Program-made: the position numbers and the translations under genes
The notes under the pieces: generated by a model
Database searches by the model: none
What the model was told of the DNA's origin: nothing
The model's input: the letters and a program-made list of their open reading frames with translations, nothing else
Part shown: positions 41,567 to 51,819 of the stretch, one piece after another
Position numbering within the stretch: position 1 is the first letter of the stretch
How the letters are laid out: every line of letters begins with the position of its first letter
From: Phallusia mammillata
Lineage: Eukaryota
Direction of reading: 5' to 3'
NCBI GenBank assembly: GCA_965637545.1
Contig: OZ281497.1
Location: forward strand, 19,778,001 to 19,842,000
DNA: 64,000 bases

Positions 41567-44500
41567 ATGCCACATAACAGGCAGGAGAAATTTCCGGCAC
41601 CACCAGCGTTCGAGGAACTATCGGGTTTGGATTTAAGTCACCTGAGCTCGGAAGAAAGGGCGGCGATTCTGGAAGTGGCGGCACGAGCAAAGCAGATAGA
41701 GCAAGTGGAAACACGCCGTGTAAAGTAAGTGATCTGAATTATTTGTTTTTTCTTTGAGATTATAAAAAGGCAGTGGTTCGAATTTTTTCAACTTTTTTTA
41801 TGTATGTATTATAAGTTGCTGCTTGTACACGCTTTATTGTTAGTAAAAGGTGCTAAAAAGAGGTAAGTAATCATGCGGCATTTTCAGCTTTAAGTATAGT
41901 ATCGCTATAGTGGCTGGTTTTGGTTTGTTCTATGCTCAATAACGTTAGTTCCCCAATACATTAAAAAATGCTCTTAGCAAGCGGTTATCATGATGGTATG
42001 TGTTTTTCGTGAATCGTGTTAGGTGTGACTAATTAAACCTACTACAGATTTGCATCGTAGCAAGTCCACTTGTATCCCTTGTACTACAATTAAAATTTAA
42101 TCCTTTTCCTTAGGTTTAACATTCCTAATCTTTTATAGGACAATAGAAAAACAGGTTGAAGATTTTTCCCGTTCCAAGCAACCGGCGTCACCACAACGTA
42201 CGGCATCTGGTAGTGTCACTAGCAAAACGCAGCAAATTGGCCAAACACAACACCACCGTGGTAAAGCAGACTTCTCACAAACAAACCCTCTTCAAAACAA
42301 ACATCAAACGCAATTTGGTAAGCAGCAGTTCCGTAAAAATGTGCTTATTTCTTGATTTTCGAATAGTGAAGCATTACATTTTTTGGCAGCCACATCTGCA
42401 TTTAAAGATGCATCAAGTAAAGCTATTCCGCTCAGCGCCAAACAGCAAGTCGGAAATGTCAAAATCAAACAAACCACCGATGTGGAGCATAAATGTTCGT
42501 TTTGCAACGTCCCGTTGACAAGCAACTTGAATTCTAAAGGACAAACGTTCTCAAATGCGAGCTTACAAGAACTGAAAAAATGTACATCTTGTGGACGTCA
42601 TGTATGCAAATCGTGCATCGTCCTATCGAAGGTTTTGGCAAAGGTAAAAGACAAGAAATAGTCCTTTATTTTTTTACAAGTAACAAAAATAAGGCAGTTG
42701 GTTGTGCAATATTTTGTTTTTAACTTGTTTGTGACGAAATAAACGACCCTAGGGCCGTTCAAGCTTTAACCATTACTATACGCCGGGTGATTATCCAAAA
42801 CTAGATAAAATTTATCCTACATGCCGTTATGGAAATACTTTCGCAACGAGTAAACTAACTTTTTGTTGTTAACTAAAGCTTTTGTTACGCTGGGGATGAT
42901 ATTTAACATATTCATGGGCTTAGACCGGTAGCACTTAAAAAAATTGCAAGGGGAGCGTTACGACAAAAATAAAAACTTTATGAACCGCTGTCCTATACGC
43001 TAACAAAAAATTGCATTGTTCCAGAAAGGTGAAGTCTTATGCAAGCTGTGTAACAAGCAGCGTGAGCTTGCAGCGAAAAGCAACGTTTGGTTGCAAAAAC
43101 GGCCTGCATCTCAACTACTTAGAAGTGCAAGTGTCGATACATCTAAGGTAAGCAGTTTTATAAAGTGGTACATTGGCAATTCTCACAATAAGATCTGATG
43201 TTAGCTAACACAACAATCTTGCACAGAATGAAGGTACAGAGAAGAGTGCCAAGTTTTCCGAACAGGCATTAAGAAGAAGATCTTATTCTGCAGATAATTC
43301 GCATGCAGTGAAAGATTGCCGGAAAAGTAGGCTAGATCGATTTAAAGTATACAAGTAAAAAATATTTGTTCAAAAACTTATTTTTGTAGGAACTCCGATG
43401 AGTCTTCCTGAAGCATTGATGCGCCAATTGTCAGAAGATAAAGAGATTTCGAAGTCTAAGCATCACAAACAAAAACAAAAAGCAGATCCGCAATCAAAAA
43501 AGTCGATGAAGACCGAAAGTGGAAGTGCAAAAAATACAATAATTGAACACCGTCCTCCAAATGGACTTCCCTCAGCTGGCCAAGACCCGTTGTCCAAAAG
43601 CAACACAACCAAAATATCGCCGAATGCTAATATATCGCGAATGCCGAAACACAAAGCACCGACTGAACACACTGTGTCCAAATCAACAATTAAGGAACCT
43701 GTACAAGACGTAGAAAACCCCACATTATCATCCACCGCTGTGGCGGAGATTAGGAAACCGAACGTAAATATAACACAAAGTCATCGGTCCACACCTAATT
43801 CATCACCATTATCGTTCACCAAAGATCATCAATCTGCGCTGCCCAATTCAGTACAAAAGCCTAAAGATGAAGCAAGCAGTGTGCTGGAAAAGTTAAAGAG
43901 GCAATTTCCTTTGCAAGCAACAAAACCTGATACTGTAAGAAAGGAAGATCAACCTTCTGGTATTGTGACTACGGTACAAGAGAAGTCACAATTAAATAGT
44001 ACCGGCATCAACCCAGTTAAGGAGGAAATACAAGTTGACCAAAAGTCGACGAAACATTCGGCGGCACCAAATTCATCCAAACCAATTGTTAAACCATCGG
44101 AGTCCATCACAAAGCCATTAGAGTCCACAAATAAGCCAATGGCGTCTGTAAATCAACCATTGGAGTCAGCACATGGACAATTAAGCCATGTCACTAAATC
44201 TCTTAGATCATCAGAACCAGTAACAACCATTTCTAACGAAGTTTCACAAACCCCACTAAATAAAGGAAGAAAAAGCTCGCTGGATAAACAAGCTATCGAT
44301 GATACTCGATTAGCAAAGTCAAACGAGCAAGCAAGGGAAAATAAAAAGACCGGGAATTCCCAACAGATTTCGGAAACTACACACACGGATATGGAATCAA
44401 ATAAGGAAAGAAAGGACGGCGTTAATAGACATGGCAGTTATGTCGCTAAATTCTATGAACGAGGCCCATCAAAAGAGGAAGTCCATGATTTTACTGACAA

Positions 44501-50500: not shown

Positions 50501-51819
50501 TCAGGTTAGATTCGTATAATACATGTGACAATTTTTATGATTGCAAATAGGGTTTGCTATACTCACTTAAGCACTGTCATGTGAGAAAAAAGGTTTTAGT
50601 TTTTCTAACAACATTTTGACAGAGTCGCATCGCGTTCAATTAACGACGACTCGACACCGCTTACTCCGTCATCACGTCAAGCGAGTATCCTCAACATCAG
50701 TGAAGCGAGTCAATCCAAGCCTCAAAACGCGCAACGAAACTACGTCATTGTCGATGACGTCACGCAAATTGTCACATCAGGTCCGCAGCCAACGAATGAA
50801 AATCGAACCCAAAAGCGGAACCCACAAGGCAATTCTCGTGCTGATGGTCACCAACCCCAGCCACAGAACGAAGTGACGAACCGATACCGCGGCGACAATA
50901 ACAGAGTTTACTCCGGCACATCTCAAGGTGACTACTCGTCTAGCCACAGAATTCCCCGCACCAACCAGCGCCACTCAACAAACCAGCAGCTACCCCCGAG
51001 CAGGAGAACAATGGGAAATGGAACCTTCCACGCTCGTTACGCTTTACAAGATAGCGAGGAGTTGGAACGAGCTTTTGCGCTTAGTCAAAACAATTACGTT
51101 CCAAGTAAGATTATTTCAGACAAGGACAAGGGTCACTATAAAGAGAACAAACAAACCGCGCGCACGAAACTATATGACGAGGTGGATTACAGGACTATCG
51201 GGGATGATTATCATTATATGAGCCCCACGAAACAAAATGAGAAGGGTATTATAAATATTTCAAACATTTTTTACATATAATAAATGTGTTTTTGTATTGG
51301 ACGCAGGTCAAAGTAAACAAGAATATATCACGCCACAGCCACGATACACAGAAAACGTGGGACGACAAAACTTGGAACGTCAAACCCACGAGGTGGCAAT
51401 AGAGAGTCAAATTGATCAGCCACGTGAGGAGGATATGCGCACTGTCGTTTCGGATACGGAAGGTATTATAATACCTAGTATTTGGCGTCGCTGAATGGTC
51501 TCCTAATCCACATGTAGACATAAAATGGTTTCGTACACTCTTGGTACACTGGACCCCGTAAACCAATTTTTAACATTACACTGAATTGTATTCCATAAAC
51601 TCAGAGTTTTTCGATGTAAACCGGTTCGGCGTGATTTTAAGAGTATTAGGAAGCCATTACATTTGCTTGGATTCGATACTGTTTTGTTTTCCAGCCTACC
51701 ACCTTCGCCATGAACTTAACGACTGGTTTGACAAACCACGTGATTCCAATAGCCGTGGTGGCCGCGGAAGTGACGCGATGTATGCAGAGTTTTCCAATGA
51801 TCAAATGCTCGATAACTAA
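41567..51819 (+). CDS. PCLO: Piccolo/Bassoon-family presynaptic scaffold homologue (~2250 aa)
   Basis: N-terminal DLSHLSSEERAAILEVAARAKQIE; one RIM/Piccolo-type Zn finger (CSFC..CTSCGRHVCKSC..LCKLCNKQRELAAKSNVW); then SKRTLPQPP, TRLRQTMEDLDQEEKELDLRLRYLELG, RNYVIVDDVTQI and [23 protein letters not shown], matching recalled vertebrate Piccolo/Bassoon homology motifs in the same order. About 18 phase-compatible exons including a 2.6-kb exon (46547-49140). Confidence 0.85.

Follow-up and report, generated by a model that had tools for sequence, protein, structure and literature searches.

Does a sea squirt possess a counterpart of the vertebrate active-zone proteins Piccolo and Bassoon? The question is raised by a gene at positions 41,567 to 51,819 of a stretch of 64,000 nucleotides (nt) of Phallusia mammillata DNA (contig OZ281497.1 of assembly GCA_965637545.1, positions 19,778,001 to 19,842,000 of the forward strand), referred to below as the window, which contains no N runs. 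According to the comparisons described here, the gene is probably the sea-squirt counterpart of both proteins, most likely a single gene predating their duplication (probability roughly 0.8). It is classed as homologous to the two, and as their probable pro-orthologue, and not as 'a Piccolo' or 'a Bassoon', because only one zinc finger is encoded. No paper describing a tunicate Piccolo or Bassoon was found in a literature search.

The RIM/Piccolo superfamily is characterised by finger, PDZ and C2 domains and includes an invertebrate 'Piccolo', Fife, Clarinet/CLA-1 and 'Chalumeau' (Orvis 2022, PMC9282427). In the same study, Piccolo orthologues are described for molluscs and many arthropods, lancelets and echinoderms are without them, and tunicates are not mentioned. 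Fife and Bruchpilot were named as distant invertebrate versions in a 2016 review (PMC4709825). An earlier interpretation made from the letters of the window alone (the sequence-only reading) had cited the common description of the pair as vertebrate-specific, with only Fife and Clarinet as relatives in flies and worms, which is outdated by the mollusc and arthropod orthologues (Orvis 2022, PMC9282427). The invertebrate 'Piccolo', Fife, Clarinet and 'Chalumeau' belong to the same superfamily outside vertebrates, which shows that vertebrates are not its sole holders, and were set against the tunicate gene by description only.

Much of the evidence for the proposed relationship lies in the C-terminal part of the encoded protein, where the motifs downstream of the finger follow the order RSxSxP site, RTLPQPP, coiled coil, RNYVIVDD and C-terminal HL..E..DWFDKPRD motif. 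The coding region and these motifs, with lengths in amino acids (aa), are located as follows.

41567..51819, plus strand: complete coding sequence for about 2258 aa in 18 exons, with ATG at 41567 and an in-frame TAA stop at 51817-51819
49465..49482, plus strand: RSASVP (aa 1736-1741), candidate mode-1 14-3-3 site, the sole RSx[ST]xP site; a short motif, weakly supported
49938..49961, plus strand: KRTLPQPP (aa 1853-1860), candidate RIM-BP SH3 ligand, the sole RxxPxxP site in the protein
50152..50304, plus strand: coiled-coil motif TRLRQTMEDLDQEEKELDLRLR/YLELGRQ (aa 1901-1929), CC3 counterpart, crossing intron 50218-50283
50735..50758, plus strand: RNYVIVDD (aa 1996-2003), the same in Ciona, KNYIVVNN in locus L004 and RNYETVDD in locus L005
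51444..51744, plus strand: C-terminal motif of 23 aa (aa 2212-2234), crossing intron 51461-51692, with WFDKPR at 51724-51741

The vertebrate side of the comparison consisted of chains of the PDB and of sequences printed in papers. A coiled-coil profile made from five tunicates was searched against the PDB (177,635 sequences) and retrieved chain 8i3e_C with an expectation value (E) of 1.1e-6 and 31.2 bits, the next chain following at E = 0.24. The 33-aa coiled-coil exon of the window matched 8i3e_C only, and the Ciona protein gave two matches among all PDB chains, rabphilin-3A with its finger and 8i3e_C ('mKIAA0559 protein') with its coiled coil. Since KIAA0559 is aczonin/Piccolo (PMC2164979), 8i3e_C is a fragment of mouse Piccolo. 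The coiled coil CC3 spans residues 2933-2995 of rat Bassoon and 3657-3715 of mouse Piccolo and binds ERC2/ELKS2/CAST (PMC4709825). At the C-terminal end, the printed sequence of rat Bassoon 3569-3769 begins with a 19-mer containing DWFDKPRD (PMC13156686); these eight consecutive residues are identical in the tunicate protein, in which the stop follows about 25 aa beyond them. Upstream of the coiled coil, RTLPQPP corresponds to RTLPSPP, a Bassoon-derived sequence that serves as RIM-BP2 ligand (PMC12462525), and RSASVP, 118 aa upstream of RTLPQPP, to RSLSDP at 2842-2847 of rat Bassoon, a 14-3-3 site (PMC3597591).

These likenesses were evaluated with 2000 composition-preserving shuffles of the 2258-aa protein. 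The ungapped score was 92 for CC3 (shuffle maximum 42), 67 for the Bassoon C-terminal 19-mer aligned with aa 2220-2238 (maximum 40), 46 for the N-terminal 19-mer described below (maximum 36) and 35 for RTLPSPP (maximum 34), each of them reached by 0/2000 shuffles. RSLSDP scored 19 with a shuffle maximum of 28, was reached by 884/2000 and is not significant on score alone. The sequence-only reading had proposed a Piccolo/Bassoon homologue keeping the coiled coil and its flanking motifs and had named motif alignments without significance as a refutation; its proposal is supported by the 8i3e_C match, the results for CC3, the C-terminal 19-mer and RTLPSPP, and the match to the Piccolo/RIM N-terminal motif. 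The anchors with published rat Bassoon positions (2842, 2933-2995 and 3569) are found in the same order here (1736, 1901-1929 and 2220).

For RNYVIVDD, the presumed vertebrate counterpart is RNYV(L/M)IDD; a Piccolo version of the C-terminal motif is likewise presumed. Literature searches for KRTLPNPP, RNYVLIDD, RNYVMIDD and CC3 strings returned no matches. A look-alike search of the ESM Atlas with the C-terminal 447 aa gave noise-level matches only (at most 0.77). Word-index searches with the big exon, with Ciona P0014 1452-1596 and with Ciona P0018 1822-1925 retrieved tunicate proteins only and no vertebrate Bassoon or Piccolo, within the limits set by query length and shared 5-mers.

In overall architecture the protein resembles Bassoon: it is large and mostly disordered, starts with the N-terminal motif and a rabphilin/RIM-type finger, lacks PDZ and C2 domains and shows the C-terminal order of 14-3-3 site (RSLSDP/RSASVP), RIM-BP ligand (RTLPSPP/RTLPQPP), CC3 and ..E..DWFDKPRD. 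Likeness to Piccolo/aczonin is seen in 11/19 residues of DLSQLSEEERRQIAAVMSR, in the finger core CX2CX4CX2C and in CC3 as the only PDB match. Rat Bassoon comprises approximately 3,940 aa, and the 2258 aa of the tunicate protein agree with the previous estimate of about half the vertebrate size. Bassoon is N-myristoylated and has an MG... start, whereas the tunicate protein begins with MPHN. Moreover, the tunicate protein has 2258 aa and one finger, compared to a rat Bassoon that extends beyond position 3769, carries zinc fingers in duplicate, contains three regions of coiled coil and ten of homology, and ends in a polyglutamine tail (PMC13156686, PMC4709825, PMC2164979).

The gene is expressed, and all nine 3' exons were confirmed by RNA. 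The exon structure is as follows.

41567-41724, 42139-42317, 42390-42643, 43025-43147, 43227-43326, 43390-44519, 44721-44802, 45004-45195, 45898-46083, plus strand: 5' exons 1-9, predicted
46321-46478, 46545-49140, 49418-49724, 49847-50047, 50118-50217, 50284-50390, 50623-51244, 51306-51460, 51693-51819, plus strand: 3' exons 10-18, from spliced RNA contigs
51781..52134, plus strand: C-terminal YAEFSN, stop at 51817-51819 and 3' untranslated region (UTR) to about 52102-52134, from RNA contigs; YAEFSN and the stop are also present in locus L004

Contigs of four public sequencing runs (X1, X5, X11 and X9) were compared with window positions 46250-52249. Eight identical GT..AG joints were found in each of X1, X5 and X11, which are transcriptome-sized assemblies of three independent studies. 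The genome-sized run X9 was colinear with the window DNA and showed 0 of the eight joints, and X1, X5 and X11 are therefore regarded as RNA. When joined, the nine 3' exons form a single open frame with a terminal stop only. The introns 50218-50283, which interrupts the coiled-coil motif (EDLDQEEKELDLRLR/YLELG), and 51461-51692, which interrupts the C-terminal motif, were both seen spliced in RNA. All motifs of the sequence-only reading as well as its single zinc finger were located, and its two intron-split motifs are joined in transcripts.

The 5' exons represent a manual, homology-guided model that uses GT..AG splice sites, keeps the reading frame open throughout and draws on the resemblance of aa 1-291 to Ciona P0018 (E = 2e-45) and on the length of the RNA transcripts; an automatic splice-chain search for these exons gave an implausible output, and the manual model was used instead. 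The start of exon 5 is ambiguous (43227 or 43266). RNA contigs carry 2602-2635 nt upstream of 46321, of which the model accounts for 2404 nt. The remaining 198-231 nt may be 5' UTR or a 5' exon not yet seen. There may be a further exon upstream, an outron kept in the transcript or a site of spliced-leader addition. An acceptor-like site, TTTACAG/GGGAGAAAT, is located at window positions 41549-41566, 9 nt ahead of the ATG.

At the 3' end, contigs of X5 and X11 terminate at 52102 and 52134. The X1 contig (4714 nt) extends about 2.7 kilobases (kb) beyond 52249 (window 52135-~54960, plus strand). The extension is explained by alternative use of a long 3' UTR, or else by unstranded assembly that ran into the 3' end of a convergent netrin-4-like gene. 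An in-frame deletion of 6 nt relative to the window was found at 49498 in the DNA run as well as in two RNA studies; with it, two residues are lost from a part of exon 49418-49724 that is poorly conserved, and it looks like a natural allele. Single-base differences to the window also occur among the contigs.

Relatives of the gene were found in tunicates. Word-index matches of the central exon were unannotated open reading frames on other contigs, and the loci around them hold the same small motif exons downstream. The motifs recur at orthologous loci in Ciona and further tunicate-like genomes or transcript sets, at least four in all besides P. mammillata, and judged by these alignments their conservation among tunicates is well beyond chance. 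KRTLPQPP is replaced by KRVLPAPP, KRSLPVPP or RRHLPDPP in other tunicates, while RSASVP is matched by RSSSVP or RSLSVP in Ciona and by RSASVP in L004.

In Ciona, LOC104265744, with the longer model P0018 (2271 aa), is the direct orthologue, with one finger, the same motif order and similar length. Its layout is N-terminal motif, one finger, RSSSVP, RRHLPDPP, EDLDQQEKELDMKLRYLELG, RNYVIVDD and C-terminal motif; the C-terminal and other motifs are more diverged than in P. mammillata, and 70 additional N-terminal residues are predicted. One profile-search cluster contains XP_018667383.2, 'uncharacterized protein LOC104265744 [Ciona intestinalis]', in line with the forecast of the sequence-only reading that automated annotation would call such a protein uncharacterised. 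By these matches, tunicates in general have conserved the family, which carries no annotation. The most diverged orthologue among those compared is L005 (Logan SRR10746997 contig, 458-6702; protein P0012), with KRSLPVPP, DDLDQEERELDLRLK/YLEVG, RNYETVDD and VVSDSE as motifs, short introns and a GC content (guanine plus cytosine) of 39%; its source is probably a distant tunicate.

The N-terminal end of the protein contains three elements with counterparts in the superfamily.

41630..41686, plus strand: N-terminal helix motif DLSHLSSEERAAILEVAAR (aa 22-40; pattern DLSxLSxEER) of RIM/Piccolo/Bassoon type, 11/19 identical to the printed aczonin/Piccolo motif
42494..43051, plus strand: one double zinc finger (aa 148-206) with four CxxC pairs, split by intron 42644-43024
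43079..43090, plus strand: SNVW after the finger, a degenerate SGAWFF-like element of rabphilin/RIM, aligned with rabphilin RSGAWFFK

The N-terminal motif printed for aczonin/Piccolo/RIM is DLSQLSEEERRQIAAVMSR (PMC2164979), and its 11 identities with DLSHLSSEERAAILEVAAR account for the score of 46 given above. The motif also aligns with helix 1 of rabphilin-3A and does not separate Piccolo/Bassoon from RIM. The finger spacing is CX2CX25CX2CX4CX2CX14CX2C here and CX2CX14CX2CX4CX2CX14CX2C in Ciona, the central spacing of four residues fitting the rabphilin/RIM/aczonin/Bassoon finger class. When a two-species finger profile (with Ciona) was searched against the PDB, rabphilin-3A (1zbd_B) was the best match (E = 8.6e-4), and the RIM2 finger was found at E = 3.5. 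With Pfam FYVE_2, the Ciona finger scored 19.1 bits (cut-off 27.2). Behind the finger, ..AAKSNVW.. is aligned with ..KRSGAWFF.. of rabphilin, an element absent from aczonin and Bassoon (Wang et al., PMC2164979). Taken by its sequence, the N-terminal end looks more RIM/rabphilin-like than that of the vertebrate paralogues.

Between finger and C-terminal module lies a large exon; S, T, K, E and P are abundant in the protein as a whole.

46545..49140, plus strand: large exon encoding the central 865 aa, for the most part disordered; tunicate alignments show conserved blocks
47589-47660, plus strand: conserved central block FFRRTTSTDNFEDLL, from tunicate alignments
47820-47837, plus strand: conserved central block RRMSEP, from tunicate alignments
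48060-48086, plus strand: conserved central block RCVSCGVLA, from tunicate alignments
48264-48314, plus strand: conserved central block VDLCQLTALIEALKNVQ, from tunicate alignments

RRMSEP is a second conserved site, upstream of RSASVP. The central exon turned out not to be where the protein is conserved. Look-alikes of FDSD.E and EGPAE to the printed Bassoon segment 738-1035 are not collinear and were taken as chance. PxDLS and TQT motifs were not found in the 2258-aa protein, and Pfam searches with single exons gave nothing useful. No Pfam match to a PDZ or C2 domain was obtained with any exon or with Ciona P0018. Hidden PDZ or C2 exons are unlikely, because the transcripts end at about 52.1 kb and the next gene, netrin-4-like, lies on the opposite strand.

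Several observations weigh against a counterpart of Piccolo and Bassoon. A three-species profile made from the conserved core of the central exon and searched with HMMER against 1.84 billion protein representatives yielded 9 matches, all tunicate-type and of the same family, and no vertebrate protein; by these searches, most of the protein is without detectable vertebrate similarity. CC1, CC2 and the other Piccolo/Bassoon homology regions, the charged central region among them, were not found with this profile or in the comparison with printed segments. A second zinc finger was found neither in the 2258-aa protein, which has only a lone CVSC outside its one finger, nor in Ciona. The Ciona finger reached 13.7 bits with Pfam zf-piccolo (PF05715; cut-off 30), below its FYVE_2 score, and SNVW adjoining the finger is a RIM/rabphilin trait that aczonin and Bassoon lack. 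Furthermore, RxxPxxP and RSxSxP are generic short motifs, and RQLPQLP of RIM matches RTLPQPP at 5/7 residues.

The main point in favour of two other readings is the RIM/rabphilin-like N-terminal end. In the first, the tunicate gene would display the ancestral chordate state, Bassoon-like, free of PDZ and C2 domains and with one finger carrying RIM/rabphilin-type Rab-binding features; the PDZ-C2 cassette of Piccolo and the second finger would then be vertebrate additions, and the protostome 'Piccolos' with PDZ and C2 domains would be RIM-like paralogues. We regard this scenario as unlikely; if it were true, the history of the active-zone scaffold would be redrawn.

In the second, the gene would not be an orthologue. 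It would come from a different RIM-superfamily branch, be it RIM-derived, Fife-like or 'Chalumeau'-like, that lost PDZ and C2 domains and holds CC3 and the C-terminal motifs by older ancestry or exon shuffling. The helix motif, the double finger and the SGAWFF-like SNVW behind it are shared with the Rab3 effectors RIM and rabphilin-3A, the finger prefers FYVE_2 over zf-piccolo and has rabphilin as best PDB match, the N-terminal motif is common to RIM and Piccolo, and extra RIM-like families of deuterostomes have been described (Orvis 2022, PMC9282427). However, PDZ and C2, by which RIM, Fife and Clarinet are defined, are missing here, the finger is located about 105 aa from the helix, and the C-terminal motifs are of Bassoon/Piccolo type, the CC3 match being specific to a Piccolo fragment and DWFDKPRD being printed for Bassoon (PMC13156686). 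Apart from the N-terminal motif and the finger, PDZ and C2 domains, no similarity of RIM to aczonin was reported (Wang 1999, PMC2164979). Descent from another RIM-type branch is thus considered unlikely.

It is quite unlikely that the gene is an orthologue of Bassoon alone, which would require that the split of Piccolo and Bassoon is older than the divergence of tunicates and vertebrates and that tunicates lost Piccolo. The Bassoon-like architecture without PDZ and C2 domains and the stop soon after DWFDKPRD would fit, and RTLP.PP and DWFDKPRD were compared with printed Bassoon sequences only. The CC3 match, in contrast, is to Piccolo. The human Piccolo and Bassoon genes lie in the 7q21/3p21 paralogy region, which likewise speaks against such an early split. 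A further counterargument is the conclusion that Bassoon derives from Piccolo through the vertebrate genome duplications (Orvis 2022, PMC9282427). It is very improbable that the protein is a disordered one peculiar to tunicates, resembling Piccolo/Bassoon by convergence of short linear motifs and by a charged coiled coil of generic type. In favour of this, RxxPxxP and RSxSxP occur widely, RSLSDP gave no significant score and most of the protein matches nothing beyond tunicates; against it, five separate anchors occur in Bassoon order, the coiled-coil profile picks one chain among 177,635 PDB sequences that include many coiled coils, eight consecutive residues of DWFDKPRD are identical to rat Bassoon, and shuffle maxima are exceeded for CC3, both 19-mers and RTLPSPP.

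If the gene is the counterpart of Piccolo and Bassoon, its product would be an active-zone scaffold at presynaptic release sites, by analogy with the vertebrate proteins; orthology, binding partners and localisation are here inferred from sequence comparison. The CC3 coil would dock the C-terminal module to ELKS/CAST, and RTLPQPP would connect it to RIM-BP and hence to calcium channels. A 14-3-3 switch at a phosphorylated serine might loosen this anchoring, as a 14-3-3 phospho-switch was shown for Bassoon S2845 (PMC3597591). The long disordered spacer, together with the helix and finger of the N-terminal end, would extend towards synaptic vesicles, similar to Bassoon, whose N-terminus is directed to vesicles and whose C-terminus faces the membrane (PMC8632625). 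RNYVIVDD and DWFDKPR are retained and are therefore candidate conserved binding sites.

The gene next downstream in the window is arranged tail to tail with the scaffold gene.

54486-62331, minus strand: netrin-4-like gene, Laminin_N E = 2e-38, laminin EGF repeats, best PDB match Netrin-4 (3.5e-34)

Its laminin-N domain had made it a candidate for a BSN-linked laminin-beta gene, indicative of synteny, which was ruled out by its netrin-4-like identity. Upstream, a segment of about 2.65 kb is duplicated in tandem with 89% identity, at 7557-10171 and 15048-17680 (also 6993-7295 and 11038-11332). Each duplicate holds 5' exons of a minus-strand gene for a Fringe-like glycosyltransferase (Pfam Fringe, E ~1e-17). 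An uninterrupted open frame of 1481 aa without Pfam match is located at 21463-25905 (plus strand); its first ~600 nt (21481-22085) have 85% identity with the short segments 7557-7825 and 14839-15309, beside both Fringe-like copies, as if the 5' part of this gene had been copied along with the Fringe-like duplication. The region 57-5633 (minus strand) holds exons whose gene encodes a cyclic-nucleotide-binding domain (Pfam cNMP_binding, E = 6.6e-8, 2567-2875), as well as a basic, disordered open frame of 396 aa at 4446-5633 (minus strand).

The label 'vertebrate-specific' is still commonly given to Bassoon and Piccolo, in reviews too. The finding is incremental and not a surprise. The parts kept since before the vertebrate duplications would be the N-terminal motif, one finger, the RIM-BP ligand, CC3 and DWFDKPR, and may thus outline a minimal functional core of these proteins. 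Since the larval nervous system of Ciona is small and fully mapped, the gene is a candidate marker of release sites and a potential genetic handle on them.

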